64,000 nt of DNA. It comes from Selaginella moellendorffii (lineage: Eukaryota > Plantae > Lycopodiophyta). Within the stretch, counting starts at the first letter, position 1. The number at the start of each line of letters is the position of its first letter. This document shows, one piece after another, positions 770 through 42,840 of this stretch. Both the position numbers and the translations under genes were made by a program. The notes under the pieces were generated by a model, which saw only the letters and a program-made list of their open reading frames with translations, made no database searches and was not told the origin of the DNA. Location: the NCBI RefSeq assembly GCF_000143415.4, contig NW_003314277.1, positions 741,878 through 805,877 of the forward strand, given 5' to 3'.

Positions 770-2377
770 ATGGAGATGAGCGAGGAGCTCGGTATGATCT
801 AGGCGTCACGAATTATCTATAACAGTTTCTGTGTGTCAGATCCTTTTCTCGCTGCCTACGGCCGGGAGGTAAAGCATGCCAGGCTCCAGGACCGCTGCCT
901 CTACATCCCGTCTGGCTTCTTGGGCCGTTACAACCTGTCCAAGCTCTGGGTCCATCCAAACTACCTTTTCATGGATCAGTTCATTGCGGAGAAGTGGAGC
1001 AGGGTCGTGAATGAGAGGAAAGGGTTGAAGAACTTCCACATCGTCTCAACGCCAGGTATCGGCAAGACGTTCTATGGCCACTACTTCTTTCACAGTAGAG
1101 CTCAGGAAGGACAGAAAGTAGTGTGGAGGACCGAAGATCCAGAGTACTTCTTCTTCGACTTCTCGCTGGACGATCCTCTGGTGCTGCAATCGAACTGGTA
1201 TACTCGACCGCGGGGGTGGGACATGACGAGCGTCTGGCTCATCGTCGACGGGGGCTCGAGGGGAATAAGTCACCTGGGGCCTCTCATCCAGTGCGTCTCG
1301 CCAGATCGCACTGGCTACTACGAGTTCTCCAAGGACCATGGCTATATATGCCGCCTGGGAGCGTGGTCTCTCGAGGAGGCGCAGCAGTGCAACGAGGAGC
1401 TTGAGCTGGGAATGACAGACGAGGAAATCGGTGTCCGCTTTTACTACTGTGGCGGGCTACCAAGGCTTCTCTTCAACACGGAGAAGTTCTCGGTGGCCGC
1501 GCTCCAAGGGTTGGTGCACGAGGCAGCTGCCAGGGTGGAGAGCTGGAGAAATGTGCTCCACTGCACACTCAACTCGGACAAGGACCCCGCTGTTTCTGAT
1601 ATTCTGCTCCACTACCGTCTTACGACTGACAGATTCGACTCGAACATACACCTGGTGTTTGGCTCGGACTGCATTCAGAAGCTTGCTTTTGAAAGGTTTG
1701 AGGAGCAGGGGTTTCAGGCTTTCCGTGACTTTTTCGACTTATGCCGGGGATATCCGGTTGCAAACACCTTGGCGGGCAAAATATACCAGCAGCACGTCCA
1801 CAAGGTACTTGCCACTGGAGGTGACGAGTTTGATCTTCGATCCTTGGAAGAGGAAGGTGACGGCGTCGAACTCTTCCGTCGGAGGCCGACGTCAGTGAAG
1901 CGGCTGCGCGAGTGGAAAGTGTTCGTAAAGAAGCGGTGCGTGGGGTCTGGTTTCAACGTTTACTCCAAGGACGTGAGTCCTGCGGACGCTTATCGTGCAG
2001 GGGCGGAGGAATCACGGGGCCTTGCAGGCTTGCCTGACAATTGCTTCGTGGAGCCTTACGCGTCAAACGAGAAATCTTTCGACTCGTTGGTCACTCCGGA
2101 CGTAATTCTCCAGGTTACAACGTCAGCCACGCATCCGGTCTATTGGTCCAAGATCCACGAGCTCGTTCACGGGTTGGATGAGTTGCATGACAAGCTCAAG
2201 CTGGTGCGTCCCAAGCAGTACAAACTCATCTACGTCGTTCCCGAGCCTAGCTTTGAGGGATACACGTACCAGGGCTTCAAGAAAGACGATGGATCCATGT
2301 ATCAGAGAGATGTTGCCGGGATGGACAGGGTTCATCAGTATGTGATGACTGTTCCATGGAGTGCTCTTCAAAAGTGA
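770..2377 (+). CDS. Crinkler/RHS-like (CR) P-loop NTPase + PD-(D/E)xK restriction-endonuclease-fold protein, copy 1. Micro-exon 770-791, intron 792-839, exon 840-2377
   Basis: Walker A STPGIGKT, Walker B WLIVDG, VSPD, W-SLEE, GGLPRLLF, then PYASNEKSFDS..LQVT...H, IYVVP, QYV, which is the typical CR NTPase+REase layout. The ORF-track GTG start lies in a gtatga...tgtcag intron; splicing gives MEMSEELD-PFL in frame. Confidence 0.8.
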
Positions 2378-2605
2378 CTAAAACAGAAATCCGGTGGCTC
2401 TTGTTACAAACGAATCAAAGTTTAGTCTGCTCGCGTTATCTTTGCTAAGAACTTCATACTAAAGATCTGCAGGAGTGAGCCAGAAGTTACCACTTACAAG
2501 GCCATTGGACTGGCTCTCAACAAAACGAAACTGCGATTCATCTGTGAGCCAACACAACAATCGAACAATGATCTAAAAACCTCTTTTTTCTTCCAATGCC
2601 GCGCG

Positions 2606-3731
2606 ATGTTGTTGCGATTGAATCCAGAGCTCAAGGAGCCACCACCAGTAGCAGCGAGAAAGACCCACGCGCTGGATCCCAAGCGCGTCCACTTCTTCAA
2701 GTCCATGCTCAAGCTCCACGGTGACGCCAAGAACCTGGACGCCGGGCGAGCGGTCCACCTCCAGATGATCACCAGCGGCTACCACCGCGACCGCTACCTC
2801 TGCAACCTCCTCATCCAGATGTATGGCCGCTGCCGCAGCGTCCACGACGCCATCGCCGTCTTCCACACCGTGAGCCGCAAGAACGTCTTCACCTGGACCA
2901 TCCTCATCGTCGCTCACACCCACAACGGCCTCTTCTTCGAGGCCGTGGAGCTCTTCCGCGAGATGGACGTCCACGGCGTCCAGTCCGACGAGTTCACCTT
3001 CTCCGCCATCCTGGAAGCCTGCTCCAACCTCGGCCTCGCCTTCCTCTCGCTCGGCAAGACCATCCACTCGAGAATCCACCAGCAGGGCCTCAAACTCACG
3101 TCCGTCCTGGCGACTTCGCTCATCAGCATGTATGGCCGGTGTGGCTGCGTCAACCCGGCCGTGAAGATCTTCCACAGCCTCGAGAACCCGACGGTGATAT
3201 GCTCCACTGCCATGATCGACGCGTATGCCCAGAACGGGCATATCGAACAGGCTGCGGAGATCTTCGAGAGAATGCAGCTCCAAGGCCTGGATCCCGACTT
3301 GATCGCCTGGACTGCGATGATGACGGCGTATAACCAGCTCGGGCATGCCAGAGAGGCGCTGCTTCTCTTCCGGAAGATGGACCTCCAAGGTCTCGAGCCG
3401 GACAGGTTTGCATTCGTCGCTGCTATTGATGCTTGCTCTAGCATCCCGTCACTGGAGCAAGGCACTGTCCTCCACTCTCGCTTGCTAGCCTCGTGGGTGG
3501 AATGCGATGGTGTCGTCGGGAACGCGCTGCTAAACTTCTACGCCAAGGCGGGGCTTGTTCACGAGTCGAGGAGCCTCTTCTCGAGCATGAAAGTGAAGAA
3601 CGTCGTTGTCCTTGGAACTAGCCTCGTCAACATGTACAGCAAATGTGGAAGAAGCGGAAGAAGTCTTCAAGAGGATGCCCACGAAAGATAAAATCTCGTG
3701 GACTGCCATGGTGACTGCCTACGCTCAAAAC
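2606..3731 (+). pseudogene. Chimeric truncated PLS-class PPR gene (5' part of PPR-A fused to an internal piece of PPR-B)
   Basis: Nearly identical to 43044-44044, then jumps at cgt (3604-3606) to sequence matching 45584-45718, with a further 8-nt deletion; lacks E domain. Confidence 0.85.
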
Positions 3732-6399
3732 CATGGGAGAAGCGACGGCTCCCGGTGTGAGCTTGCTGCTACTGCCAGCACTTGTTAATCGTTGAGATGT
3801 TTCACAATGGCTTTCTGTATCATAGGCCTCCCGCAACGCTGTTGTAAAGTGATGGTGCTCGCCGTCCTTCTACACGTGAATGTGATAAGCCGATTTCTGT
3901 TGTCCAGAAAATGCCAATTAGATCTAAATTGAAAGGAGAGAAAACTGCATACCTGCAGATAATAACCATAGCTTATAGTGGAGGAAATGCCATTGATGTC
4001 GACAGTTATGTCACAGCCAGAACTAGCAACTCTTTTAGCTGTGTTTGACACAAGATGAATCTTCCGCAAACTGCACAATATGACTCCACTTGGGGAATAG
4101 GCAAAAGGGAAAACAATGCGTCTACCTTTACTAAGAACTCGCTGTCACTTGAATAAGTGACATCTAAGCTCATCGGTTCGCATGAGAGACTCTCGGACTC
4201 AGGCATCCAGTCTAACGAGATCTTCCTGGTATAAGGATTGTTGACTCGAAAACCAGAAGTTGTATGCCATGGGCCTCCAGTTCTCGATTCTGCACTGGAA
4301 ATCGTAAATGCTGGCTATCTAAAAACTGCGAGTCGATCTTACCTGGTCGTCGAAAACTCTCCCTTACACATACGCCCACGGCCGCTAAAGCAGCGAAAGA
4401 TTTTACATCTCGCTTGGCTCTTTCGGAAAAATCTAGTGGCTGTGTTTCCAGGTCCCCAGCCCTGAAAGCCGGATGTTTTGCAAGCTTTTTTAAAAAGTGG
4501 ATGTTAGTTGGAAGTCCAGCAACCTGGCGAATGCAATGTTAGTACTCAACAATAATTACAAAAAAAAAGAGCAAACCAACTTGCCTGAAAATTCGAGAGG
4601 CAATTATGCAGCTTCGCCAACGCCATATCGCGATCACTACCCCATACGACCAGCTTGGCTATCATAGGATCGTAGTGGACGCTTACAGCATCACTTTGCT
4701 CTACACCCGTCTCAATTCTCACTGCATTGACAAGATAAACTGCTTAGTATTCTTCAAGTTTGACACGAGTTACCAGTGGATGAAGCGGGAGGTGGATTAT
4801 AATGGTAAAGAACTCCAGCAGCAGGTAGAAAACCTCTTGGAACGTTTTCAGCATAGACCCGAGCCTCAAACGCATGACCTGCTTAGCTGCGATAATCTTC
4901 GGGAATAAGCGGTATACTCTTTTGCTCAAGTGGAAGGCTTTCGCCATTTGCGACACGAATTTGCCATTCCACCAAGTCTTGACGCGTCACCATTTCGGTG
5001 ACAGGGTGCTCAACCTGACCACAAGTTTAATTCAGCATATACAGAAACTAGTGGAAGTCCGTCCTTACTTGCAAACGTGTGTTCATCTCCATAAAGAAAA
5101 AATCTCCTGTTGCAGTGTCGACAATAAACTCGACAGGTAATTCACAGCCTTCGATAGAAAAGAAATTTAGATTTGATAGCAGCAAATCACAAAAGAGGAT
5201 ACCTTAGCCGCATTGACTGCTGCTTGTCCTATTGAGTTGCGAAAGTCGTCTGACATGAGCGGCTGGAATATTAAAAAAAAAAACATGGTGAAACAGCAAA
5301 CAGCCTGAAATATTGTCCTACCGCTGGTGCTTCCTCTATAATTTTCTGGTGGCGCCTCTGAACGCTACAGTCCCGTTCAAACAAATGAACAACGTTTCCA
5401 AAGCGGTCGCCAAAGATCTGTCAGCAAGTCTGTGATAAATTTCCAGATTGCAGAAAATCTCCCACCTGGACTTCTATGTGTCGAGGCTGTGCGATATACT
5501 TCTCAATCAAGACCCTGGTGTCGCCAAACGCAGCAGCAGACTCACGTAGAGCGCTTCTCAAACTGTCCAGAAACTCGTCTCTGCTGTGGACAATCCTCAT
5601 GCCCTGAACCAAAACTTTACAAGAGAAATTAGTAGTGTCGCCAACATGAAACAAAATACCAAAAAGAAAGCAAAAAACCAACCTTTCCTCCGCCACCAAG
5701 AACAGGCTTGATCAGAACGGGATAGCCAATCCGATCAGCCTCAGATTGCAGCAGCTCGTGGCTCTGATCATCCCCGTGGTATCCAGGAACAACAGGAACA
5801 TTAGCACCGCTCATAAGCTTTTTGGAGGCACTAAGGAGTTCCAAGATAGTTCTTATGGCTGGTTCTTTGAAGAAAAATGGAGATGGCGTACCTTTTGTCT
5901 CCCATCAAGCTAATCGCAGCTGCCGAAGGGCCAATGAATGTGATCCCAGACTCGTGGCAAGCCTGCGCAAACTTCGAATTTTCTGATAGAAATCCATACC
6001 CGGGATGGATTGCCTGAGAAGAAGTTGGATATGTATGGGTTGAGAAGAAAAGAAATGAAAGCTTACATCGGCTCCAGTGCGACGAGCAGCGTCGAGGATG
6101 GAAGTAGTGGACAAGTAGCTGAGCTGCGCAGAGGCGGGGCCGATAAACACTGCTTCATCGGCTCGACGGACGTGTAGCGAGTTTCGATCGGCATCACTGT
6201 AAACCGCCACCGTTTTTAATCCCAAGCTACGCGCGGTCTTGATGATCCGGCACGCAATCTCGCCCCTGTTCGCGATCAGGATCTTCTCGATCGGCTGCTG
6301 GGCCGGAGATTTCTCCACGGGAGGCGCTTGAGAGAAGGGATTGGCGAGCGAGCTCCAACATCGCTTGCTCCTCCTCGCAATGGATGCGGAATTTCCCAT
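3732..6399 (-). pseudogene. MCCA: 3-methylcrotonyl-CoA carboxylase alpha (biotin carboxylase) subunit pseudogene, copy 1
   Basis: Spliced exons give [62 protein letters not shown]. Frameshift at ~5135 (GCT GTG AAT TAC CT GTC GAG; the xNAGT codons are missing). Broken at GAVASPM before the biotinyl domain. Confidence 0.85.
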
Positions 6400-6899
6400 G
6401 GACGATCGGCAGCGCTAAAGATGAGCTAGAGAATGCGTGTCACCTGATCGAATCGAGGAGCCAGGACCTCCGCTGGAGAAAACCCTAGCCTTGAGATACC
6501 TTGTCGTGCTTATCCCGTGAAATAGTCTAATCACTTGAGAAGGAGACCTCTGGAGAAATGAGTGGAGGCTCCACGAATCCATTGCAAGGAGTGACAATAT
6601 CGACAGCTATCTTGCTAGTTGGTAGTGCGATAGAGAAAATTCACCTTCGACTCAATGGGGAGATATTTCTTCTTGGACAGTGATGTGCACTGCATATGCC
6701 CTCAAAGGGCATTTTCTGGAACTACTGGATCATGGCTTATAAACTCGTGAAATACTAACACTGATTTTTATATGACATGGCAGGACTGTGAATCTGAATC
6801 CGTCCTTGCTTTCTGAGTTTGATTAAGTTAGAATGGGGATTATGCAAGCTATGTGCGATAATCCCTATGAATCTGAGTGATCCTTGCGAGTGGAGGCTC

Positions 6900-7310
6900 C
6901 GATTTTGCTCTTGGGTCCCTGGAGGTGAAAGGTGGCGGCGTCCAGTGATCGGTGAAGCGGCTGCGCTCGTGGAAGGTGTACTGAAGCGGATGAATCTCGC
7001 GGACTCGCATGCTTGCCGGACTATTGCTTCGTGGAGCGCTACTCGTCGAGTGGGAAGGCTTTCAGCTCGTGGACATGATTCTGCGGGTGACCACGACGAG
7101 AAGTTGCTGGCCCGAGATCGAAGAAGTTGTTCGAGCGCTGGATGATTTGCATGACAAGCGGAAGCTGGCGCGCCCCGAGCAGTACAAGCTCGTTACGTTG
7201 TTCCCGAGTCAATGCTTGAGGGATTCACGTACCAGTTCTTTGAGGAAGACAATGGAGCTGTGTCTGAGCGACGAGTTGCAGGGACGGATACATGATGACG
7301 GTTCCATCGT
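6900..7310 (+). pseudogene. Decayed fragment of a CR nuclease domain
   Basis: ILRVTTT..W.EI.EVVRALDDLHDKRKLARPEQYKL matches VILQVTTS..WSKIHELVHGLDELHDKLKLVRPKQYKL of the CR gene; frameshifted. Confidence 0.8.
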
Positions 7311-7401
7311 AGTTCGTCTTGAGTTTCAGCATGAATGAGTGAAAATCCAGATGTAAACTATGAACTTTACCTTGCAAATCATGAAGTTTGTTCTTCTCGT
7401 A

Positions 7402-7530
7402 CAAGAATCCAACAATGGGATAGAAGTAATCAAGAATCCAACAATGAAAAAGATGTTTCAGCACGTCCCACAGGTATGCTTCAGAGCTGTAGCAAAAATG
7501 ATAGAAGTAATCAAGAATCCAACAATGAGA
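7402..7530. repeat. Short degenerate repeat (aagaatccaacaatg / gatagaagtaatc)
   Basis: Three aagaatccaacaatg copies; related array at ~24232-24440. Confidence 0.7.
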
Positions 7531-7543
7531 AGGAAGGGACAAG

Positions 7544-7705
7544 CAGAAAAACAAGCTCACTCAGAGGCCCAGGACTTGAGCAACGAGTCCATACCTCTCT
7601 CGTAGATGGCCTTGGCAACGAAAGCGTCCTCCTGCTTCCCAAACCTCACCTCCCACTCCATCTCCATGGCCCTCTTTGCCGCTTCCTTGTCCCGTGCGTA
7701 GTCTG
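7544..7705 (-). pseudogene. Inverted 3' fragment of the TPR-SET gene
   Basis: Reverse complement of 25949-26109. Confidence 0.85.
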
Positions 7706-9667
7706 ACGTAGATTTTTCTCTAATTTGAAGTAGATGAGGATGGCTAGTGCAACCACTGCTAATCCAATAAACACAGTGAACACTTGGAAGACTATCCAGT
7801 TTGGAGTAACTTCAACTGTGGATGTCGTTGTCACTAGGAATGCTGTGTCATTATTGAGCTGGAGAATTGTCTCAGCAGTGGCAAGGGAAGGTTCCTTTTG
7901 GAGGTCATTTATGCTGAAGTAGAGACCTGGCAAGCTTCCTGCCACTGAACCAGCAATGAACACTGTCCGCCCCAAAGTTCTGATTAGTGGACGGTAGCCT
8001 GGCTTACCGGCCAACTTAAGTTGATGGAGTTGGCGAAACAATGAATCTTCCCACTCTAAGAGTGTCCTGCTCAAGGAGCCAGCACAAATTCCCAGGAATG
8101 CAATGACAAATGTCAGAAAAGACGCATAAACTTGTGTTCGACGAGAAGATCCATCTTTCCAATACTGCTTTCCAAAATGATGAACGTTGCTCACTTTCAA
8201 CAAGTCATTGAGAACTTCTTGGACGTTCATGTTGTCATATGCGGACAATTTTTTGAAACACGGTGGTGAATCAACCTTAACCAAGAAAATAAAACATCAG
8301 CCTCCAGAAAAAAAAAGTCATAGTATGGAACTCACCTTGAATTCTTCGTTCCCGCAGGTGATGTTCCCTCCTGGTTTCTTCGTCAACAGAAACTCTTTGA
8401 TGACAGTGCCGCACACCTTGTCGGTTTGCATACGAGAATACTTGTACTTAATGCCGGTGATGAGCATAACTTGGGAACCCGTCACGTTTTTTATACAAGC
8501 ATCGAATAGAACTGTGGGATTTGGCTCTTGGTCTCCTTCTAATGTTGTCTCAATGCATGTTGTCATCTGCTCCATCCCACTCAGCACACCTTCTGTGAGG
8601 CTGGCAAGGCTGGCGCCAATGGGAAGAGAGTCATTAAAACTAATTAGGACTGTCACCGGGAGGTTAAATTTGATGCTGTAAGATCCAAGATAGATGATAT
8701 GTTCATCTATAATATGATCCCAGTCCCAAAATGATCGAGATGTCTCACACTGAGAAGTGTTGAAGGCGAAGGAAACATCTTGGCCTTGCGTCAAGTCGTA
8801 TCCAATTATGCAAACTTGGCGACGGCAGGCGCACTCTAAGAATGGATAAGACAAGTAAGAAATAACATCCGGGATGTAGTTGATGGGAACTGATGGGCTG
8901 CATTCTCTAATATCATTGCTGTAGTAAGACCATGTCGAGTCGTTGGAGGGAATTTTCTCCTGGCTAATCCCTGTGGATATGTTGGACCTCGCACTGCTAG
9001 CAAAGTTGCTGAAATAAAATCCAGACTTGGTGAGAACTGGATGCGTGAATTTGGAAGATGGCATTGCGAAAGGTACTTTACTGAGAAGTAAGCCAAGATC
9101 CGGCGTACCGCTGGTTTTGTTCACTGAGACTATAGGTGCAGTGATCTTGCAGCGTTCGACAGCAGACGCCCCCATATCACTCATATCATTGATGCACAGG
9201 CGTAAGCTTATCCCCCAGTGAATCGCCATTTTCCAGATCAGACTAGTACCATGCTGGCGAATGACTCCTCCATACAAGTGTGGATCAGGCGAGTTGAAAA
9301 GATCAGCTTCTACAGTTTTGTTGTTGCTTCTCCAAACCCGCCATGCACTGAGCTTTTGATAAGCAGCAGCAACCTCCGTCATGCTAACACTGCTCGAATT
9401 TTTAGTTTCACCCCACACGAGTGCTGACGCAATGGAGGTGCTTGTGGCCCATTTGTAGAAGGGGTCGTTTGTTGTCGCAAACACGTTGGTTTCCCAACAA
9501 GTTGTACCTGTCTGTTTGATGAGATCAGAATAGAACTCACCTTCTGGCTTCTTTTTGTTCACACATAACGAGAAGACTAGCAGCACAGCTGTTGCAATTA
9601 CAATGGCAAATATGAATACTGCAATGGCAACAATGCTCGACGTCTTCCATGGCTTCCTTTCCGCCAT
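7646..9667 (-). CDS. Unknown multipass membrane glycoprotein, copy 1 (~653 aa; exons 9667-8336 and 8275-7646)
   Basis: Two long ORFs joined in phase by a 60-nt gtgagt...taag intron. N-terminal hydrophobic helix, Cys-containing ~450-aa domain with many N-x-S/T sequons, three C-terminal hydrophobic segments. Confidence 0.75.
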
Positions 9668-10519
9668 AAGTTCGCTAAACGAAAAAACAAAAAATGAAAG
9701 CTGTATCCTTCAAGGCTGTTAACAAGTCGAACCTATTGGCAAATTAAAGGAACATGGTAGTGGAGAATCTATTCAGTGCAACATGTCCTTCATCCCCAAC
9801 CGTAGCAGCAATAATGCAAATGATTCTTTCCACTGCCAGTAATTTGAAAAACAGTAATGCGTATGTGATTTGGAGGGACAACTTTTCCTCGATCTTGGAT
9901 TTGTCGCTCTAATGCATTTTTCCTATATTCTCCGGCACCTCCCAGAGGTGTCTCATTTGTGTCCATGGCTTCGTCCCCCATAAGTTCGCTCAAATTAAAC
10001 ATGGGCTCAGAAGCGGGACTTGGTTTCTTGTTAATACGGAAAGTGAAAAGTGAACTTGAAAGTGAAGGTTCACATGAATTTATTCATTATCAAGCATTTC
10101 TGACTTCCACTCAATGAAAGTTATTCTACTGCCACGTCGGCCTCTATCAGTGTTTAGAAAAAGGTAAATGTAGAAGACGAAAATTGCCTTAAGGATTTGG
10201 CTTGAATTAGAGCTTATTCCTGGACGTAGTCTCAGAGATGGAAACAAGAACCTTTCGTACTCGGCTTTACCAGTGTGAGATAGGACGCACTCCTGTCTAG
10301 ACTATATAAGACTCTCCAATGCACACCATGGCATCGTCCATGAAGCTGCCAACCTTGCCAAAGGCTAAGATTGCATCGACTACATTGGAGACTACATGAC
10401 AAAGGGGTTGTATGTAGGGAGCAACTCTCCAATCTACTAAGTTTGCAAGGTTATTTCCCACTAACCCTGGCACTTGGATCTTCCAAGTCGACCAGACACC
10501 ATTGTCCAATGTCCCTGTC

Positions 10520-12017
10520 CAATGGCATTTGCTGGAGGCGCTGGATCTCTTCCGCCGGATGGATCTCGAGGGCGTGAAGCCGGACGACGTGACCTTCCTC
10601 GCGATCCTGGGCGCGTGCTCCTCCGCCAGAGATCTCGCCACTGGGAGCGATCTCCACGCCCGGATCGTGGCGAGTGGAATCGCGATCGATGTCGTCGTTG
10701 GCAGCGCGCTCGTCCACTTCTACTGCAAATGCGAGCGAGATCCCCGACCCCAATGTTGTCACATGGCGTCGATCATCGCGGCGCACGCCGAGATGGGATT
10801 GCATCGCGAGGGGATGGATCTCTTCCGGAGGATGCAGCTCTCCGGCGTTAGCGCGGACAGGCTCGTGATCGCCAGCGTGCTCGAGTCGGATCCATCCATC
10901 CGGAGCGCCGCGGCGCCGATTCCCGAGTGGATCTTCCTCTCCGGGCTGGAGCGCGATCCCTACCTGCGAACTGGATTGATCGCTATGTATGGGAAGTGGG
11001 GGCTCCTCCACGAATCCATGGCGATCTTCTTCCGCGAGAGCTCGCTGGATTCCAATGTGGTGGCCTGGACAGCGATGATTTCTTCGTGCTCCCAGCATGG
11101 CCGCGTCGATCTCGCCGTGGCGCTCTTCCATCTCGAGGGCGTGCGGCAGGACTGCGTCTCGATGATGACGATCATGGACGCGCTCGCCAGCGACCCCTCG
11201 TATTGCCCGCGCAACCTCGCGGGGATCGGCGAGGTGATCGCGTCTTGCGGCCTGGAATCCAGCTCCGCGATTGGGAACTCGCTCATCAATCTCCAACGCC
11301 AGGAGCGGCCGGATCGAGCGAGCGCTGGAGATCTTCCACGGGATGATCCATACGCTTGCCCAGAGCGGCAACGCCGCTAGCGTTCTAGTGATGCTCCGCG
11401 AGATGGATATCGAGGGCATCAAGCCCGACGCCGTGGTGTTCGTCAGCGCGATCGATGCTTGCAAATCCAGCTCGCGCCTTGCCGACGGCCGGATCCTCCA
11501 CGCCAGGGCGATCGCCAGCGGCGTCGACGACCGCATCCAGGTCGCGAATTCCCTGCTCGACATGTACAGCAAGTGAGGGCGCCTGGATCTCGCCATGGCC
11601 GTGTTCCCAGCACGACACCATCGCCTGGAACTCGATCGTCATCTCCTTCGCGCAGCATGGGCGATTGGATCCGCGCGAGGGAGCTCTTTGCATCTCGAGG
11701 GAATGGAGCCCAGCCGCGTGACGATCGTGAGCATCCTCTCGGCGTGCCGCCACGCCGGGCTCTTGGAGGAGGCGCGGCGCTACTTCGTGTGCATGGCGGA
11801 CGACCACGGCATCGATCCAGCGCTGCTCCATGATCGATCTCTTCGGCCGCGCGGGGTGGCTGGATCACGCCGAGGTGCTGGTGCGCGAGATGCCCATCCA
11901 GCCCGCGATCACGAGCGTGACGGCGCTCCTGGGATCTTGCCGGATCCACGGCGGCGGACGTCCGGGGCGGCGGAGCAAGCGATCGATCTAGACCCGAGAG
12001 CGCGGCTGGGGGATTAG
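10520..12017 (+). pseudogene. Frameshifted PLS-class PPR pseudogene
   Basis: EALDLFRRMDLEGVKPDDVTFLAILGAC, VVAWTAMIS, VTIVSILSACRHAGLLEEARRYF are spread over several frames with stops. Confidence 0.85.
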
Positions 12018-12221
12018 CGTTGCTAGGAAAGAATAGTGGAATGCGAAGAGCCCTAAAAACATATTCTTTTTTTATACCTTTTTACAGAATTGAAGAATCT
12101 AGTTTGGAGATAAAAGGCATATTTAGTTCACGGGATAAAGGCATATTCCTTTCATTAAGAATCTTTTCGAATCTTTTCTATTATACCTTTTTAAAAGTAG
12201 AAAAGAATCTAGTTTGGGTTT

Positions 12222-14653: not shown

Positions 14654-14892
14654 CTTACATCGGCTCCAGTGCGATGAGCAGCATCGAGAATTGAAGTAGT
14701 GGAGTAGGCTGGACCGATAAACACTGCTTCATTGGCTCGACGGACGTGTAGCGAATTTCGAGCAGCAATACCGCCACCTTTTTTAATCCCAGGCTATGTG
14801 CAGTCTTGATGATCTGGCACGCAATCTTGCCCCTGTTCGCGATCAGGATCTTCTCGATCGGAGATTTCTCCGTGGGAGGCACTTGAGAGAAA
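14654..14892 (-). pseudogene. MCCA: Decayed MCCA exon-1 relic
   Basis: [32 protein letters not shown] plus the exon-1 donor. Confidence 0.8.
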
Positions 14893-15419
14893 GGATACCT
14901 TGCCTGTTGGATACTTATCTTCCTATCTGAGTTAAGTTCCTCGCTGAGTAGTAAAAACATGCTCAACACTCAGCTGTTCATATCAGTCACAGAAAGATCT
15001 TTTGCAATGTGGAATGACTAAGGTTCAAATGATATAATGCCTCCCCTCCTTGTTGCTTTGGCCAAGAAAAACTTGCCATGAACCCCTAAACTTCTGTAAA
15101 GGTTTGGTAGTCTCACTCTTTGCAGTTGGAAATGCCGAAGAGCTTACATTTCTCACTAATAGAAACAAACAAAATAAAAAAAGTCATATGACTAACACAT
15201 GAATGGAAACAAATAATAAGCTGTATAGCAAGGTGATTTTTTCCCTCTATGTAAAGCTGCTAGAAAAATAAAAACAAACAAACAAGAAATGGAGCAATCC
15301 ATAAAAAACTGAAAGCCCATGTTTTGTCTAACAGCAAAAAAAACACTTAATAAATTTTTTGGAGTTAAATCTAGTATTCTGAAATTATAAAGTTCTTTCT
15401 GATTTGGCTAGGACAATTG

Positions 15420-15830
15420 TTTAGATTTATTGACACAATGTGAGTAGATTTATAATTTCACGGTGATACATACAAATATGTGAAAAATGAACATACTTAG
15501 AATATGCATATTTTAGAATATTCTACTATCTAACAGTTGATATTTATTTGAATTAATTTTTTATTTACAATTTAATTTTTCCTAAACACTTCATAATATA
15601 TTCTAGTAAGGATATTATGTAGCCCTGATCAAACCTTGGGTGTTCAACTTTACACTCTTTGTTGAACTTTTAGTTTATATGTGAATTATTAACTTTTGCC
15701 TTATATGCATTATAATAAATTTGGATTTGAGCTTCATCTCAAACTCGAATTTTAGTTTGGATATGGATATATAAAGTGAAAGTCTAAAATAGTTGTTTTA
15801 TTAAGGTGTGGTAGGTTGCAAATACCAAAA
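15420..15830 (-). mobile_element. Heavily mutated retrotransposon relic (copy of 31740-32110)
   Basis: 15721-15821 aligns without gaps to 32010-32110, which is contiguous with recognisable integrase motifs. Confidence 0.55.
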
Positions 15831-17440: not shown

Positions 17441-17461
17441 AAACTACATTGTTTCGGGGAG

Positions 17462-19151: not shown

Positions 19152-19285
19152 AACTTCTGCTCGCGTTACCTTTGCTAAGAACTTCATACTAAAGATCTCC
19201 AGAGGTTACCACTTACATCATCTGTGAGCCAACACAACAATCGAACGATGATCTAAAAACCTCTTTTTTCTTCCAATGCCGCGCG

Positions 19286-32581: not shown

Positions 32582-33081
32582 TGTGAGACACAAAATCCCT
32601 AGGCCCCAAAGTGGAGCCGGAAAGGGTGCCACGTGGTAGTGGCTAAAGCGAGAGCCAAACGAGCGTAACACGTTTGGACCAAAAGCTCCGACTTGAAAAG
32701 TCAAGAGCGGGAGTGGAACTCCCAACGAAGTGCTCGAGGAACGAGCACGAAGCGAGCAAAAAGCGAGGCTCCAAAAAGGGACCCAAAAGGACCAACACAT
32801 GACACGTGGAAGTGTCCGAGATGGACTCGAGTTGGAGTCCGAAGTGGAGTCCGAGATGGATTCGAGTTGGAGTCCGAAGTGGAGTCCGAGATGGACCCAA
32901 GATGGAGTCCGAGATGGAGTCCGAGATGGAGTCCGAGGTGGACCCGAGATGGACCCGAAATGGAGTCCGAGATGGAGTCCGAGATGGACCCGAGATGGAG
33001 TCCGAGATGGACCCGAAATGGAGTCCGAGATGGACCCGAGATGGAGTCCCAGACGGAGTCCGAAGTCGAGACCGAGACCGG

Positions 33082-33113
<32 letters not shown>

Positions 33114-34223
33114 TCGGGACCGAGACCGAGACCGAGGCCGAGGCCGAGACCGAGGCCGAGCCCGAGCCCGAGTCCGAGTCCGAGTCCGAGTCCGAGTCCG
33201 AGTCCGAGTCCGAGTCCGAAGCCTGAGAGGGTGAAAGCCCAAAGCGTTCGTCTCCCAGACCCTGGGGGGTTTGGTGAGCTCCAAAAGTATAGTAGGGGGG
33301 AGGACTGCAGTGGAGCCAGTTTGGCCAGGAAAGGCCAGTTTGGCCCAGGAAGGCCGGACCCAGTGTTGGGTGATGAGATGCCCACTGTGAAGTCCAAGAC
33401 TGGAGTGAACACGGACCGACAAGCGGGGTAGCTTGGTGAAGTGTTCAAGAGCTGGCTCTAGTTCCCCCGGGAGATCGACTGGCCGATGCTCCCAGTCCAA
33501 GTGTGGGTGGCACTAGCTACTTGGATACCTGTCGTGGCTCAATGGAACCTCGCTCTAAGCCCATGGCTAGAGCACCTAAAGGCGGAAGGCGGGGAGAGTA
33601 CCCAGGTGGCTCGCGTAAGGCCACGGTGTTCCGAAATGTTGTCCCAAAGGCCCAAACTGTAGAAAGGAAGAGGAGTAGTCCTCTGGGGTAGTGACCAGGG
33701 ACACAGTTGTGTGGTGAGGAAGTCCCAGAGGACTGTGGGACTTAGTGGTCGGGCCTGTGGGTCTCGATCCAGTGGCAGTGTGGGCAAGCACGGCCAGGGG
33801 CAGAAAGGGACTTAGTGGGGACTGACAAAGGGATATTGGGGAAGGCTATTCCCCTTGTCGGTGGGCATCCTAAGGATGCTAAGGAGTGGATCTGAGATGA
33901 CCACTCACGGATGGTTTGCCTAGTCTTGGAGAGCCAAGACTGTGATGCAAGTGGTATTGGACTACCAGTGTGGCAAAGGTGATTGGGCATGGCCTTAGCG
34001 TAACGGGTTGCTATGTCGGTGGTACCTTTGAGTGTCGGTCATGGGATCGGACACGTGGAGCACTTGGACCAAGTGCAAATGTTGAGTGGCATGGATGCCA
34101 TTCTCAGGGCTAGCAAGTCCCAAGTCCTGGATTGGACTTATGGAGGTTGTGAATGAGACTCCTCCAAGTGGTCGGAGGTGGGGTTAAGTGACTAAAGTAG
34201 AATGGAAAATTTAGTCGCTTACA
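32582..34223 (+). repeat. 5' LTR with internal 12-mer (ggagtccgagat) and 6-mer (ccgagN) arrays at ~32810-33220
   Basis: Direct repeat of 38347-40004. Confidence 0.95.
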
Positions 34224-37200
34224 ACTTGGTATCGGAGCTGTTCCTTAGTCCGACTTTTATTGGTGCTCAAGTATATCACCACTAGTGTTGGCATCGGAAG
34301 GTCCGAGGAGTGGGCCTATCCTTGAGGAGTAGCAAGTCGGCAAGACATGGCTCTCCATTACAGTTCATGTGTGAACTTGTAGACGAGGTGGTGGATAGAA
34401 AAGGGCCAATAATGGAACGACTTTGGGATCTTGGGAACAGTGCAAGGTTTTCCTCATTGAGTTGAGGAGGTGATCCAGATGAGCGTTTGACTCAGCAAAC
34501 GGGTTAATGTAGTTGGGGTAAACAACTATAGTTGGGATCACGGGGAAGATAGAGACTCCAAAAACAATAAAGGAGTCACAAGTTTATCCTCACATGGTTG
34601 AGGCTGGTGCTCATGAAGGTGAAACCGGAATGGATGACCGTGAGAGGTCAAGTATGGATGAGGACACGAGTCCTCGAAATGGTAGTCGGGGCTACCTCTA
34701 ATAAATGCTGGAACAACCCAAGGAGTTGGGGGTGTATTAAGTGGATGAGTTGGTATTCTCATCACATGGACAAGTAGTCCTAAGGGGCAAAGGTTGCCCC
34801 CAGAGAACAAAATCAAGTGTCGGAGTAACACTTATGAAAATAGTCCTTTTGAGTAGGACAGGAATGCAAGAAGTGTATTCCAGTGAGCTAGTGCCTCACA
34901 AGTAGGACCTTACGGGTCTGTGGATTAACCAAGTCCAAAACTGCTAGATGACTCAAGTAGAGTCAAGGGATGGTCCTAAAAGGACTGATGGAAGCATTTG
35001 GACTGAGGTGTGTTGTACCCCACAAAGGATGGGGGGGGGGGGGGATCATAGGATCCAAGAATGAGAACAGAGGGTATCTCATCGATGGCAAAATGTGCCA
35101 TGCTAAAGTCGTGGGAAAGGTGTTCCCAAAAAGAAAACAACTTTGACACAAAGTTGTGTGTGACCTCCATGGTGTAGTGCTAACGGATGGTTGGCATGAG
35201 AAAGAGTGGCATTGGTCTTGGCAAAGACTTAGACACAAAGAAGAAGTGTCATAAAGGTAGGCTCGTGGAGCCGATGGTGTGGAGACACCAAATGTGTCAA
35301 GGTGTGATACCTTGAGGCTATGTTGGTGGGTTCATGAGAACCCTTTGCCAAAGGAATCCCAACGGAAATGGGAATGGCATAGCCTAAGCTGCAAAGCATG
35401 CAGTTGGAGTGCGGTGACCCAGATAATGATGGAGGTGTGAAAGCACCAAGCAATGAGTTGTAGGACTTGACAACTATGAGGCAACTAAGCAAGAGGTGCA
35501 AAATAACTAGTTAAACGGGTAGAAGGTAGCTACCCAAGACTTCTAGCATAGGGAAGTAAGATATACCCTTGCGGGGGATAAGTTGCTTATGTTGCGATAT
35601 AGTAAGTCAATGTCATAAAAGGAAATACTCATTATCAAGAAAGCCATCATTGGGACACCCGAACACTCTAGAACACCAGAAGGTGGTGTTTGATGTCGCG
35701 AGGGCAATGGATAAAGCCCAAGGGACTAAGTCCCTGGCGAATGATGGATAGAAGGTGCTATCCAAATGTCTAAGGTTGCGGAGACAGGAGAGGACTGTCT
35801 ACCCAAGTTGGACAAAACCAAAAATGGAATTTTGGCAAGGCTAGTGATGGGCATGTAAAGGCCCATAAGCAACAATGTAATCCCAGTGTGTGGGATTATA
35901 AGGTGAGTATACCCGGATTGAGGAACCACTCCCTGGGCTATTGGGTAGGTTCATCCTTAAGAATACTTGCTAAGGCATGATAGAAAGTGCAAAGCTATCC
36001 TCCTGATCTGGAGGAGAATGACCGAAGAAAAGGTGTGAAGCCAATTGGGATGGAATTGAACCATAGAAATCGAAGGGCATAACCAAGGTTGGTTATGCCA
36101 GCTGGGAGTGGAGAATCAAGTGGGGGCTCGAGGGTGTTGCCGCTAGCAACCGTGATGCCATGAAGAGTCTAAGTTATGGAATTGTCCATGTTAGACTATG
36201 TGGTATTTGGAAGGCTTGCAAAAGGGAGGCCTTAGCAGGCTGAGGGACAGAGTTCCTTCAAGGTTCCCAAAGACGATTCTAGGTAGCTTAGTACCTAGAA
36301 AGGCCAAGTGTAAATGGTTCATGGAACGCGTGAAATCAGAGTGGCGCAGCAGAAGCGTGGTCTTGAAGCTTGCCATGAGGCAAGGCTATCAAGGTTAGGG
36401 AAGTAGTTCCCGAGTGTTCAAAGAGAGGGCTTTGAACGAAAGTCGATGGTCAAGGACTTTCACGCTTATGCAGGAACCATGTTACAGTGGTCGGAGAACT
36501 TGCCAAGCGAGATTGGCACGTCGGGGGAACAAATACCTTAGTTGAAGGTGATAACTTCAAAAAGGGTGGGCCATGGGGCCGAGCATGGAGGAGTCCATGC
36601 ATGATCACAGACATGTCAAGTGAGAGGACTTGGCAGTGTGGAGGAATTAGGTTCCTAAACTGTGATCTGTAGCGCGCTTTAAAAATAGGTTGGTGCACCG
36701 GCGTGGGGAGTCACGCCAGGCATCTTGTGTGATGCCATCCGTAGATGCATATACGGAGGTTGGGTTCGAGTCCCGACCCTCTAGTGCTTGGGTTCGAGTC
36801 CCAAATCACTAGGGCGTGGTGATGGTTTGGAATATGAGGACACTCATATTTCGGTGGTCATGGACTCTCAGTGGGGAGACTGGTTTGGGCACACTGCCAA
36901 GCGAGGGATGCCTCGGAGTCGTGATGCACGGTTAAATTGTTTAGAGTGAAAGCTCGGCATATCTAACTTGAACGCTTTGGTGCAGGTGGCACCAAGGTCG
37001 TGGTGAGTGAGATGGGGACACCTAATCTCAGTTGTTATGAACCCTTGGCCGTAAGGGCTAGCTTGGGTGCACCGCCAAGTGTGGGGGATGCCCCCAGGGT
37101 TATAGTCAACAACTTGGAGGTCTAGAAGACCAAGTACCTCTTGGCAACTCTGTTAAGGTGCCAAGGTGAGATCACTAGGTGATCTTATGGCCAGATAAGG

Positions 37201-38111
37201 ACAAGGTCCTTGGTTGGCTAAGGAATGAAGTTCCTGGTTCAAAATGTTGAAATTGAACTGTTTAAGGTGGTGTGGCTTGGTCGTGATGACCAAGTGGGAA
37301 GAGCACCTAAGGGAAATAAACTATGTCCGTCCGATGGCATAATGAGTCCGAGGAAAGTAGTCTCTATAAAAGACCCATGGGAGGGTCATGAAGTTGGGCC
37401 ATGGATAGAGCCCATAGCAGAAGATGCTAAAGAGACATACCAGGGGCGAACATCCTCTGGACTAGGCAAAGAAGAGTCTTTGCTATGGAACCGAAAGGAT
37501 ACCTCAAAAATGGAGGTAGCGATCTGATGTTGCTGGGTGCAACAATCAAGGATAGGAGCAAAAGACTAGTGGCCAAGTTTGGGCCATGGAATTTAATGGA
37601 AGGGATCCAAATGGCAAAGTTAGCCAAGGAACACTAATGTGTTCGGTGCTAACAGCTTGTGGGAAAGGAAGTGGACTTCCAAGGATGGATTCCTAAGTGC
37701 TCCAATTTGGCGAAGTAAAAGCTCCAAGTGAGGGAGCGGTAAGGTAGCCAAATGATAGGGCCATGGACAGCCCTAACACAAAGTATGATAATTGGAACTT
37801 AGTGCCCAAGGTGGCACGAAATAGAAGAAAGGATGATGGTGCCCTCAAGTAATGAACTTCCTAGGATGGGGAAGTGGAGTTGCACAATCTGTGCAATGCA
37901 AGGTGTTGGAGACACCTAGGAAATTGACTTCCAAAAGTCAAAAGAGTAAAAGTTCCAAGGTGCAAACGTTCAATATATGGAAATTGAGACTACTTGAGAA
38001 GGAGTAGTGGGATTGACTTAGAGAAGGGTCTCTAAGAGGCTTAGCAAGAACCACTACATGTGGTCCAATCAGTCTCTAAGTTGGGGAGACTACCCTCCTT
38101 AGGGGATAGGC

Positions 38112-38243
38112 AAGGCATGGTGAGCCTTTGGTGTCAAACCATTGAGGAATATGCAAAAGGCATGGTGAGCCTTCAATGTCAAACCATTGACAAGTATGGA
38201 GAAGGCATGGTGAGCCTTCAATGTCAAACCATTGACAAATATT
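38112..38243. repeat. Three 45-bp tandem repeats inside the LTR element
   Basis: aggcatggtgagcctt...tgtcaaaccattga at 38113, 38158, 38203. Confidence 0.85.
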
Positions 38244-38346
38244 GGCTAGGTGCCAAGGATGGAAATGGTAACACATGCGGGTGTTACTTTATAAAGTGGT
38301 TTACCGTTCGATGAGGACATCGAACTTCGTCTATGGGTGGTGGAGT

Positions 38347-38858
38347 TGTGAGACACAAAATCCCTAGGCCCCAAAGTGGAGCCGGAAAGGGTGCCACGTG
38401 GTAGTGGCTAAAGCGAGAGCCAAACGAGCGTAACACGTTTGGACCAAAAGCTCCGACTTGAAAAGTCAAGAGCGGGAGTGGAACTCCCAACGAAGTGCTC
38501 GAGGAACGAGCACGAAGCGAGCAAAAAACGAGGCTCCAAAAAGGGACCCAAAAGGACCAACACATGACACGTGGAAGTGTCCGAGATGGACTCGAGTTGG
38601 AGTCCGAAGTGGAGTCCGAGATGGACTCGAGTTGGAGTCCGAAGTGGAGTCCGAGATGGACTCGAGTTGGAGTCCGAAGTGGAGTCCGAGATGGACCCGA
38701 GTTGGAGTCCGAGATGGAGTCCGAGATGGACCCAAGATGGAGTCCGAGATGGAGTCCGAGGTGGACCCGAAATGGACACGAAATGGAGTCCGAGATGGAG
38801 TCCGAGATGGACCCGAGATGGAGTCCGAGATGGAGTCCGAAGTCGAGACCGAGACCGG

Positions 38859-38890
<32 letters not shown>

Positions 38891-40004
38891 TCGGGACCGA
38901 GACCGAGACCGAGGCCGAGGCCGAGACCGAGCCCGAGCCCGAGCCCGAGCCCGAGTCCGAGTCCGAGTCCGAGTCCGAGTCCGAGTCTGAAGCCTGAGAG
39001 GGTGAAAGCCCAAAGCGTTCGTCTCCCAGACCCTGGGGGGTTTGGTGAGCTCCAAAAGTATAGTAGGGGGGAGGACTACAGTGGAGCCAGTTTGGCCAGG
39101 AAAGGCCAGTTTGGCCCAAAACTGGCCAGGAAGGCCGGACCCAGTGTTGGGTGATGAGATGCCCACTATGAAGTCCAAGACTGGAGTGAACACGGACCGA
39201 CAAGTGGGGTAGCTTGGTGAAGTGTTCAAGAGCCGGCTCCAGTTCCCCCGGGAGATCGATTGGCCGATGCTTCCAGTCCAAGTGTGGGTGGCACTACCTA
39301 CTTGGATACATGTCGTGGCTCAATGGAACCTCGCTCTAAGCCCATGGCTAGAGCACCTAAAGGCGGAAGGCGGGGAGAGTACCCAGGTGGCTCGCGTAAG
39401 GCCACGGTGTTCCGAAATGTTGTCCCAAAGGCCCAGACTGTGGAAAGGAAGAGGAGCAGTCCTCTGGGGTAGTGACCAAAGACACAGTTGTGTGGTGATG
39501 AAGTCCCAAAGGACTGTGGGACTTAGTGGTCGGGCCTGTGGGTCTTGATCCAGTGGCAGTGTGGGCAAGCACGGCCAGGGGCAGAAAGGGACTTAGTGGG
39601 GACTGACAGAGGGATATTGGGGAAGGCTATTCCCCTTGTCGGTGGGCATCCTAAGGATGCTAAGGAGTGGATCTGAGATGACCACTCACGGATGGTTTGC
39701 CTAGTCTTGGAGAGCCAAGATTGTGATGCAAGTGGTATTGGACTACCAGTGTGGCAAAGGTGATTGGGCATGGCCTTAGCGTAACGGGTTGCTATGTTGG
39801 TGGTACCTTTGAGTGTCGGTCATGGGATCGGACACGTGGAGCACTTGGACCAAGTGCAAATGTTGAGTGGCATGGATGCCATTCTCAGGGCTAGCAAGTC
39901 CCAAGTCCTGGATTGGACTTATGGAGGTTGTGAATGAGACTCCTCCAAGTGGTCGGAGGTGGGGTTAAGTGACTAAAGTAGAATGGAAAATTTAGTCGCT
40001 TACA
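38347..40004 (+). repeat. 3' LTR
   Basis: tgtgagaca...cgcttaca followed by the TSD. Confidence 0.95.
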
Positions 40005-41210
40005 AGATTCTCAAACCCTTCTCGAAGCCTTCGAATCCATAGCTCAATCTCTTGAGCCTCATAAACCTCATCAAGAAAAGGTAGGTCCTGATCAAACCAA
40101 TGGTACACATCATCCCCAAGATTCCTACGAAAGAACTTTAGCCAAACACGAGGATTGCCATCAAGAGCAAGAGGAATTAAGCCGTGAATGTCGTTATCAA
40201 CTGAGTTTGGTTGTTCAATTGCAATTGCATAGCATCAAACAATTGCACCAATTGCTTCTTTAGAGTCAAAGGAGGAAGAGACTACTACTCCACCATGAAA
40301 ATGAATGAAAAGGAAAGAGCAAAAGAAGATAAATAAGAAAAAACCTAGAAAGAAAGGAAGATCTAAACAATAGAAAAGTTAAATTTAAACCAAAATCTTG
40401 AAAGGAAAGAGATCTAGATTTTGCACTGTTTAAATTTAGCTTTTCCATTTCCTTTCTTTTGTTAAATCAAAATCTCAAATCTAAGCATTCTTCAAGAATA
40501 ATAAAAGATGCCTTTCACCTTCACCAATGTGAACGCATGGAATATGAAAAGTGAATATAGAAAATGTGTATATCAATTAGCCCAAAAACCTTAGCTTATA
40601 TATAGAAGAGAGTGCTCCAGATTAAAACTAATCTGATAGTTACCAAAATCCCACTACACTAATATTAGTATATGGCATTGTAGCCATACACTTGGACCGC
40701 ACAATATTAAAATTTATATATTATATATACAATATAAAGTTGTTGTATACTATATTTCTATAGTTTGTGCACTTGTTGCATATCACATTTTGGAATTGAT
40801 AAGTAATATATATCTCAAAATTATTTTAAATTTAATTTTAATATATATTTAAAAACTTTTGTAGCAATAAAAATTTAATAAATTTTTTATTTATGATATT
40901 TTTAAATTTAAATTGAAAAGTTTTTCCTTCTGTTTATGGAAAATCCAGAATACTATGTTTATTATGAATTTGAATAACAACACAAAAAATGTTATAAAAA
41001 AAATTATTCAAAATTAAAGATACTTTTAGTAACATAGATTTTTATCAAATATATAATCTGAGTTAACTGTTGAAATGACTAAACTAATTGAAGTTAACTT
41101 GTTTTTTCATCTTTTCTAAAAATATTTCTGAGAGTTTCATATTACCAACCCTAATTAATAACCAGGTTTTAGGGTTAAGAAACTACGTGGTTTTGCCTTG
41201 TTTCGGGGAG

Positions 41211-42840
41211 ATGAGCTCGGAGCTCGGTATGATCTAGGCGTCACCAATTATCTCTAACAAGTTTCTGTGTGTCAGATCCTTTTCTCGCTGCCTACGGCCG
41301 GGAGGTAAAGCATGCCAGGCTCCAGGACCGCTGCCTCCACATCCCGTCTGGCTTCTTGGGCCGTTATAACCTGTCCAAGCTCTGGGTCCATCCAAACTAC
41401 CTTTTCATGGATCAGTTCATTGTGGAGAAGTGGAGCAGGGTCGTGAAGGAGAGGAAAGGGTTGAAGAACTTCCACATCGTCTCAACGCCAGGTATCGGCA
41501 AGACGTTCTACGGCCACTACTTCTTTCACAGTAGAGCTCAGGAAGGACAGAAAGTAGTGTGGAGGACCGAAGATGACGTTCCAGAGTACTTGTTCTTCGA
41601 CTTCTTGCTGGACGATCCTCTGGTGCTGCAATCGAAATGGTATACTCGACCGCGGGGGTGGGACATGACGAGTGCCTGGCTCATCGTCGACGGGGGCTCG
41701 AGGGGAATAAGTCACCTGGGGCCTCTCATCCAGTGCGTCTCGCCGGATCGCACTGGCTACTACGAGTTCTCCAAGGACCATGGCTATATATGCCGCCTGG
41801 GAGCCTGGTCTCTCGAGGAACTGCAGCAGTGCAACCAGGAGCTTGAGCTGGGAATGACAGACGAGGAAATCGGTGTCCGCTTTTACTACTGTGGCGGGCT
41901 ACCAAGGCTTCTCTTCAACACGGAAAAGTTCTCGGTGGCCGCGCTCCAAGGGTTGGTGCACGAGGCAGCTGCCAGGGTGGAGAGCTGGAGAAATGTGCTC
42001 CACTGCACACTCAACTCGGACAAGGACCCCGCTGTTTCTGATATTCTGCTCCACTACCGTCTTACGACTGACAGATTCGACTCGAACATACCTGCGTGTT
42101 ACCGGGTGCTGCACCCTCACTTGGTGTTTGGCTCGGACTGCATTCAGAAGCTTGCTTTTGAAAGGTTTGAGGAGCAGGGGTTTCAGGCTTTCCGTGACTT
42201 TTTCGACTTATGCCGGGGATATCCGGTTGCAAACACCATGGCGGGCAAAATATACCAGCAGCACGTCCACAAGGTACTTGCCACTGGAGGTTACCAGTTT
42301 GATCTTCGGTCCCTGGAAGAGGAAGGTGACGGCGTCGACCTCTTCCGTCGGAGGCCAACGTCAGTGAAGCGGCTGCGCGAGTGGAAAGTGTTCGTAAAGA
42401 AGCGCTGCGTGGGGTCTGGTTTCAACGTTTACTCCAGGGACGTGATTCCTGTGGACGCTTATCGTGCGGGGGCGGAGGAATCACGGGGCCTTGCAGGCTT
42501 GCCTGACAATTGCTTCGTGGAGCCTTACGCGTCAAACGAGAAATCTTTCGACTCGTTGGTCACTCCGGACGTAATTCTCCAGGTTACAACATCAGCCACG
42601 CATCCAGTCTATTGGTCCAAGATCCACGAGCTCGTTCAGGGGTTGGATGAGTTGCATGACAAGCTCAAGCTGGTGCGTCCCAAGCAGTACAAACTCATCT
42701 ACGTCGTTCCCAAGCCTAGCTTTCAGGAATACACGTACCAGGGCTTCAAGAAAGACGATGGATCCATCTATCAGAGAGATGTTGCCGGGATGGACAGGGT
42801 TCATCAGTATGTGATGACTGTTCCATGGAGTTTGTATTAA
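41211..42840 (+). CDS. CR NTPase+nuclease copy 3 (intact; micro-exon 41211-41226, intron 41227-41275)
   Basis: Same motifs as copy 1; uninterrupted ORF. Confidence 0.8.

Follow-up and report, generated by a model that had tools for sequence, protein, structure and literature searches.

The stretch of DNA analysed here (the window, 64,000 nucleotides) lies at about 741.9-805.9 kb of the 2.47-Mb Selaginella moellendorffii scaffold GL377581.1; its positions 31211-52840 match GL377581.1:773088-794717 with 100% identity. It contains repeated copies of a gene encoding a CR (Crinkler-RHS) family NTPase and of a gene encoding a glycoprotein-like membrane protein, referred to below as 4-TM for its predicted transmembrane segments, and both are surrounded by broken copies of other genes. 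A first-pass annotation had taken the survival of these two genes among decayed passengers as the sign of an immune, self/non-self or toxin-antidote system. We consider it likely instead that the locus arose by tandem segmental duplication within a part of the scaffold that is rich in repeats and prone to duplication, and that CR and 4-TM lie together as a consequence of co-duplication, not of functional coupling.

Tandem units and their founding junction

Self-blastn of the window resolved two units of about 16.7 kb, unit 1 (772-15818) and unit 2 (17449-32107), and a terminal, partial unit 3 (41198-44044), which extends into an intact PPR gene. With additional copies located about 150-170 kb upstream of the window, the unit is present at least three times. 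The units are arranged head-to-tail and have an identical internal junction between a truncated PPR gene (PPR') and a truncated MCCA gene (MCCA'), the arrangement expected of a tandem segmental duplication (Table 1).

Elsewhere on the scaffold, at GL377581.1:574-596 kb, we identified a parent-like locus (L002) whose MCCA gene is intact (750 amino acids, with all domains) and is accompanied by genes for tocopherol cyclase and 4-TM and by a degenerate CR fragment. Their order and orientation agree with those of the window units. This block is followed by a further unit, which begins with a 5'-truncated CR gene. A single alignment crosses the PPR'/MCCA' junction in unit 1, unit 2 and L002, which argues that one founding rearrangement cut PPR and MCCA and that its product was amplified afterwards. 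PPR' and MCCA' were thus truncated at birth, since the founding junction, i.e. the unit boundary, cuts both genes, and CR and 4-TM are whole because they lie wholly inside the unit and their copies are young (synonymous divergence, dS, of 0.02-0.08). The founding event fused a block carrying CR and PPR to a block carrying MCCA, a CR fragment and 4-TM, with the breakpoints within PPR and MCCA; the fused product was then amplified into tandem units of about 16.7 kb, which appear to have been homogenised in patches subsequently. A gene-capturing transposon of the Helitron or Pack-MULE type was also considered as the source of the mosaic unit and was rejected, given the head-to-tail units with one common junction and the contiguity of the L002 gene order with intact parents.

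The degenerate CR fragment, with about 30-40% amino-acid identity (about 30% for the unit-1 copy), sits between the MCCA and 4-TM genes of every unit, and L002 carries such fragments at its positions 15175-15506 and 1249-1705. Regarding the other passengers, the description of them as broken holds for PPR and MCCA, which are truncated, and there are extra fragments of MCCA, PPR and tocopherol-cyclase genes; the SET and ACP remnants also listed by the first-pass annotation were found neither by motif search nor by Pfam scans of 20 open reading frames (ORFs), a scan that was not exhaustive.

Table 1. Features of the window; positions are counted from its first nucleotide.
Feature	Position	Strand	Remarks
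CR copy 1	776..2377	+	exon 1 776-791, intron 792-839, main exon 840-2377; open; absent from the annotation in protein collections
PPR', truncated 5' part of PPR gene	2556..3691	+	99.4% identical to 42994-44044; ORF runs into junction
MCCA', MCCA copy without the 3' end of the parent gene	3731..6819	-	Biotin_carb_N domain present
Old degenerate CR fragment, C-terminal third	6880..7317	+	unit 1
4-TM glycoprotein-like gene, copy 1	7646..9667	-	exons 9667-8336 and 8275-7646; LOC9642340, 653 amino acids
GC-rich PPR-like pseudogene region	10418..12081		within unit-1-specific stretch
Fragment matching the tocopherol-cyclase gene of L002	12695..13251	-	
Extra MCCA N-terminal fragment	14658..14969	-	Biotin_carb_N
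AT-rich spacer between units 1 and 2	15819..17448		GC 0.18
CR copy 2	17462..19151	+	one frameshift near 3' end; ORF ends in unrelated tail
PPR' and MCCA' of unit 2	19218..23493		0.05% substitution divergence from unit 1
Old degenerate CR fragment	23708..24126	+	unit 2
4-TM gene, copy 2	26749..28755	-	exons 28755-27448 and 27387-26749; corresponds to SELMODRAFT_441369 / LOC9642344
Long terminal repeat (LTR) retrotransposon in spacer between units 2 and 3	32582..40005	+	LTRs 32582-34224 and 38346-40005
CR copy 3	41211..42840	+	intact; annotated as SELMODRAFT_411787 (P0001)
Parent PPR gene region, from which PPR' of units 1 and 2 derives	43044..47189	+	ORFs of 491 and 882 amino acids

Substitution divergence between units 1 and 2 varies strongly along the unit, from 0.05% in the 4.3 kb of PPR'-MCCA' to 2.3% in the CR segment, 3.75% in the segment of the CR fragment, 5.4% in the 4-TM region and 9.45% in the unit tail. 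The near-identical segment (2538-6819 versus 19218-23493; 0.05% over 4268 nt) is thus placed between neighbours diverging by 2-9%. This mosaic suggests a later patchy homogenisation, with gene conversion as the presumed cause, or layered events, and assembly error may contribute to it, the 0.05% segment included. That the tandem structure itself is partly a product of haplotype or repeat mis-assembly, with the 4.3-kb PPR'-MCCA' segment as the chief suspect, appears very improbable to us. The near-identity of that segment would fit such an artefact, as would the use of an older draft scaffold (GCA_000143415.2) from an assembly that contains both haplotypes. However, the units differ by large rearrangements; for example, a stretch of about 3.5 kb (about 10052-13607) is present in unit 1 and has no counterpart in unit 2, and a segment matching about 13240-14104 of L002 is retained in unit 2 and gone from unit 1. 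Furthermore, the remaining parts of the units diverge by 2-9% and their spacers are unlike each other, which exceeds what we would expect between haplotypes, and the genes of unit 1 and those of unit 2 are annotated individually by both RefSeq and JGI.

The CR genes and the protein they encode

The window contains three CR ORFs (833-2377, 17520-19151 and 41269-42840). All copies, as well as a solo paralogue at locus L003, have the same gene model, consisting of a 16-nt first exon, an intron of 48-49 nt and a main exon, and the ORF of copy 1 is 94% identical to SELMODRAFT_411787. The first reading of the three copies was borne out: copies 1 and 3 are intact, with every family-conserved column kept, and copy 2 has a frameshift near its 3' end that deletes the last conserved elements. 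Indels in the CR gene had likewise been described correctly as in frame, which applies to all three indels between the main exons of copies 1 and 3. Spliced models were handled exon by exon, annotated proteins were used for whole-protein comparisons, and copy 2 entered the estimates of the ratio of nonsynonymous to synonymous divergence (dN/dS) with its in-frame part only. We obtained dN/dS values of 0.47 for copy 1 versus copy 3 (p=0.02), 0.33-0.44 versus P0002 (p below 1e-6) and 0.16 versus P0003. Judged by these values (0.16-0.47), the CR family is under purifying selection, and a ratio near 1, which the first-pass annotation had named as evidence that would speak against its proposal, is not what the CR gene exhibits.

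Using a profile built from four CR sequences, we found 1085 relatives among 1.84 billion representatives, including more Selaginella paralogues, proteins of Capsaspora and Heterococcus and many environmental proteins. One Selaginella paralogue, D8RFK7, bears the UniRef name 'Crinkler (CRN) family protein'. The Pfam Crinkler header domain (PF20147) was detected on P0045, P0085 and four of 44 N-terminally extended relatives, with E-values down to 4.5e-26, and these header-bearing relatives were matched via the CR NTPase at E-values of about 1e-17 to 1e-20. In addition, 11 of the 44 extended relatives produced weak nSTAND3 matches, and three relatives (P0003, P0036 and P0047) had weak P-loop matches to RHSP (PF07999), with E-values of 0.002-0.02; all of these matches fall short of the Pfam cut-off. 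The CR proteins themselves had no Pfam match at normal thresholds, and Pfam returned no header domain, Crinkler or other, on the window proteins and P0003, in which residues 26-47 are already family-conserved. No signal peptide was recognised in the CR N-terminus by eye, no predictor having been used.

Conservation in 144 relatives reaches 99% or more at the residues of Walker A, Walker B and an arginine (G78, G80, K81, D144 and R216), all of which are found in the three copies of the window. The same 144-sequence alignment gives at least 92% conservation for D431, Q441, T443 and H448 of the C-terminal domain; where the (D/E)xK motif would have its canonical Lys, 92% of relatives have a Thr. 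The AlphaFold model computed with this alignment (predicted local distance difference test score, pLDDT, of 88.8) has an AAA+/STAND fold followed by a C-terminal domain with a predicted beta-beta-beta-alpha-beta core (residues 418-483), in which D431 opens strand 2 and Q441-x-T443 is located on strand 3. A Foldseek search with the whole model matched NTPases only, with the best matches placing the first ~340 residues alongside RuvB, RFC, Cdc6, Apaf-1, a plant NLR and Avs proteins; against viral structures it matched generic AAA+ proteins only. A PDB sequence search with the CR profile likewise returned P-loop proteins only, and the isolated C-terminal domain had no match in Pfam.

Taken at the level of sequence, the CR gene is a genuine, constrained and headerless member of the Crinkler-RHS NTPase family. 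Its protein, according to the model, is most likely an intracellular AAA+/STAND-type nucleotide switch controlling a C-terminal nuclease-like domain. The label 'Crinkler-type NTPase-nuclease' given by the first-pass annotation is therefore well founded in its first half, by the profile, the PF20147-bearing relatives and the Walker motifs, while for the second half a restriction-endonuclease-like core is plausible from topology and motif. The CR gene forms part of an expansion specific to Selaginella, with eight or more annotated proteins, among which there may be allelic pairs.

Several known systems resemble parts of this protein. Effector modules that combine a CR NTPase with a restriction endonuclease are known from oomycetes, chytrids and further eukaryotes (Zhang et al. 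2016, in the summary of PMC5289972), and CR-type proteins also occur in land plants (PMC5289972). With these modules the Selaginella CR protein has in common a homologous P-loop NTPase and the layout of NTPase, helical region and small C-terminal alpha/beta domain; it differs in being headerless, plant-encoded and presumably intracellular, in having Thr in place of the canonical Lys, and in having a nuclease fold that is putative, assigned from motif and topology. Unlike oomycete CRN effectors in the strict sense, which are secreted and have an LxLFLAK-type N-terminus, it is encoded by a plant nuclear gene with a plant-type short intron and has no Pfam Crinkler N-terminal domain. The weak, sub-cut-off P-loop matches to trypanosome retrotransposon hot spot proteins (PF07999) fit the CR clade that is named after them, but the Selaginella locus has no link to retrotransposon hot spots. 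Among the Foldseek matches, next to RuvB, RFC and Cdc6, were STAND/AAA+ immune switches (Apaf-1, RPP1, Avs3, AVAST5 and NLRP), although TM-scores were only 0.2-0.26, with E-values of about 1e-3 to 1e-4, and CR is without an LRR, TPR or WD40 sensor. If the Selaginella CR genes are active, they would represent plant-encoded cousins of the Crinkler effectors of pathogens and would be useful for asking what the NTPase-nuclease module did before pathogens adopted it; the locus supplies three young copies with measurable constraint.

A different account of the repeated CR copies is that CR acts as a selfish mobile unit, or did so until recently, spreading or transposing by means of its nuclease and thereby seeding the copies and the rearrangements. 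We regard this as improbable. It would be in line with the transposon ancestry proposed for the family (PMC5289972, in its summary citing Zhang et al. 2016) and with the numerous CR copies and fragments in the genome. Homology between the solo copy at L003 and the window copies begins about 23 nt ahead of the ATG and ends at the stop codon, the flanks of the L003 copy being unrelated, and the region upstream of CR copy 1 is unrelated to that of copies 2 and 3, the difference beginning within a few bases of the ATG. On the other hand, a search for terminal inverted repeats around the CR genes returned chance-level pairs only, units 1-3 are tandem duplicates of a much larger block, and the retention of the intron argues against retroposition. 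The sharp edges of homology at L003 could also arise without mobility, by fast indel turnover in non-coding DNA: among the duplicated units we counted 17 indels in 352 nt at about 5% divergence, and at a dS of about 0.18 the flanks would no longer align.

Among CR relatives without an attribution to S. moellendorffii, the closest is P0011 on an 8.2-kb Logan contig (34% identity, E-value 8e-84). On scaffold GL377591.1 (L008), two CR-family genes adjoin in convergent orientation (10001-11814 and 12208-15002 of that locus), and at L007 (6699-9644) a CR-family member adjoins an LRR receptor kinase with a match to PF22812 (CR_prot_dom_plant). PPR genes were found beside CR-family genes at four loci (43044-47189 of the window, 3692-4459 of L001, 3384-8539 of L006 and 13283-17578 of L008). 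The PPR family of Selaginella is very large, and this neighbourhood may be due to chance.

The 4-TM genes and their adjacency to CR

The two copies of the 4-TM gene each consist of two exons separated by a 60-nt GT-AG intron, and the encoded proteins contain 9 and 13 N-glycosylation sequons. Hydropathy supports three strong transmembrane segments and a weak one, so that three of the four segments initially described stand firmly and the fourth does not. In a profile word search, which was not exhaustive, the family comprised six clusters, all from Selaginella, with four members on GL377581.1 and a 37%-identical paralogue elsewhere. Searches of Pfam at permissive thresholds, of PADLOC and of PDB sequences returned nothing for it, and PADLOC models matched no CR protein either. 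We infer from these sequences a lineage-restricted membrane-protein family whose transmembrane-rich half is conserved.

Both copies in the window are open, and the three indels between them in a protein-guided alignment are all in frame, in agreement with the first-pass annotation. Its term 'hypervariable' was overstated, as dN and dS are both about 0.08, with dN/dS values of 1.10 in exon 1 and 0.99 in the shared part of exon 2; here, a ratio near 1, the value named beforehand as adverse to a two-gene system, is what we observed. The C-terminal part of the ectodomain reaches a dN/dS of 1.7, which is not significant. The 4-TM copies of units 1 and 2 and of L002 are equidistant from each other and have their variable patches in common. 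Such a pattern is compatible with a functional protein whose ectodomain either drifts or diversifies, and it proves neither.

To assess the linkage of the two families, we searched by tblastn with both against six other loci (L001, L003, L005, L006, L007 and L008), including the 10 kb to either side of each. The five CR loci (L001, L003, L006, L007 and L008) had no 4-TM homology in this range, and at L005, the site of the distant 4-TM paralogue, the neighbours are housekeeping genes and no CR gene is present. Linkage of CR and 4-TM is thus confined to one amplified block, and the co-location at independent loci that the first-pass annotation had proposed to look for was not seen at these six loci. 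Even within the block, the two genes are not consistently kept together. Unit 3 has a CR gene without a 4-TM gene, as had been noted from the start, CR copy 2 is frameshifted, and L002, with its intact MCCA gene, has a 4-TM copy broken into two frames and no more of CR than C-terminal pieces. Units with both genes have them in convergent orientation at a distance of 5.3 kb, and two gene fragments lie in between. Values of dN/dS are 0.16-0.47 for CR and about 1 for 4-TM, whose ORF is nevertheless kept open (P=0.034) with in-frame indels.

Some observations weigh against mere co-duplication. A 4-TM frame without any stop after 95 random substitutions would be expected by chance with P=0.034, and coding indels in 4-TM are in frame and about 10 times rarer than in the adjacent non-coding DNA, which argues that the copies are not simply decaying. 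The ectodomain, with its non-significant dN/dS of 1.7 in the C-terminal part, may be under diversifying selection. In substitutions, exon 1 (8336-9667) differs by 6.8%, compared to 3.4% in the adjacent non-coding 9668-10052 (p=0.012). The CR fragment stands beside 4-TM in every unit, L002 included, so that CR-family sequence adjoined 4-TM before the amplification, and five of the seven known 4-TM family members lie together with several CR copies within one region of about 210 kb.

These observations bear on the proposal that CR and 4-TM form a two-gene conflict system (immune, self/non-self or toxin-antidote), in which a variable sensor is coupled to a nuclease executor and both are kept while the passengers decay. 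In its favour, units 1 and 2 each have open frames for both genes, the 4-TM frame is preserved more often than expected by chance, with ectodomain patches more divergent than the non-coding flanks, purifying selection acts on CR, the 4-TM gene has an older CR fragment as a further neighbour, and relatives of CR are conflict effectors in other lineages (PMC5289972). We nevertheless find this proposal unlikely to be correct. The linkage exists inside one duplicated block only, the CR gene of unit 3 stands alone, and in L002 it is CR and 4-TM that are damaged and MCCA that is intact. The breakpoints of the unit account for the broken PPR and MCCA genes, so that the selective retention from which the system had been deduced is explained by the founding junction and is inconsistent in L002. 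Furthermore, the dN/dS of 4-TM is close to 1 and does not exceed it significantly, the two genes lie 5.3 kb from each other in convergent orientation, and neither protein matched a PADLOC model. We give a similarly low probability to the idea of an old, co-evolving pair amplified under conflict-type selection, in which the 4-TM surface recognition protein would gate the headerless CR protein, an NTPase-nuclease acting as a switch inside the cell; on this view, the degenerate CR fragment next to 4-TM could have survived from a previous round of the pairing.

Interpreted as a tandem segmental duplication, the locus is comparable to tandem arrays with gene conversion, such as plant resistance-gene and receptor clusters, with which it has in common the head-to-tail units, a single junction, truncated edge genes, mosaic identity and a retrotransposon in the spacer; in contrast to these clusters, what has been duplicated is a CR NTPase gene along with the gene of an orphan membrane protein, neither from a known receptor family. 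The likeness to toxin-antidote or killer-protector loci consists in a putative nuclease gene and a membrane-protein gene within one repeated block, but here the co-occurrence is not conserved, the genes are neither adjacent nor co-oriented, and the comparison is drawn on sequence features. A pairing of CR with a surface protein, if true, would constitute a new type of plant conflict system; the evidence points to plain co-duplication. More generally, the locus illustrates that duplication geometry alone can leave broken passengers around intact genes.

Retrotransposon, spacers and flanking genes

The LTR retrotransposon between units 2 and 3 went unmentioned in the first-pass annotation, which described the span containing it. 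Its two LTRs of 1.64 kb are 95.6% identical and have TG...CA ends, identical 5-bp sequences at both flanks represent a target-site duplication, and a stretch resembling a primer-binding site follows the 5' LTR; a polypurine tract was also recognised. The interior, 4.1 kb long and purine-skewed, has no ORF of at least 150 amino acids between the LTRs and thus no gag-pol capacity, and the element is non-autonomous or decayed. Each LTR contains tandem repeats of 12, 23 and 35 nt, and members of the same LTR family are also found in L001, L003 and L006.

The spacer upstream of CR copy 3 (40006-41197) has a GC content of 0.29 and has a 380-nt stretch in common, at 77% identity, with the spacer upstream of CR copy 2 (15819-17448). 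No tRNA genes or Rfam matches were found in the window. Beyond unit 3 follow genes for MetRS, Snf7, inositol-phosphate synthase, a second PPR protein, a SHIPPO-repeat protein and a P450. The ORF of the SHIPPO (sperm-tail PG-rich) repeat protein (605 amino acids, 59516-61333, plus strand) overlaps the upstream extension of an antisense PPR ORF (57014-60175, minus strand); the real start of the latter is probably further downstream, and the overlap is likely not real.

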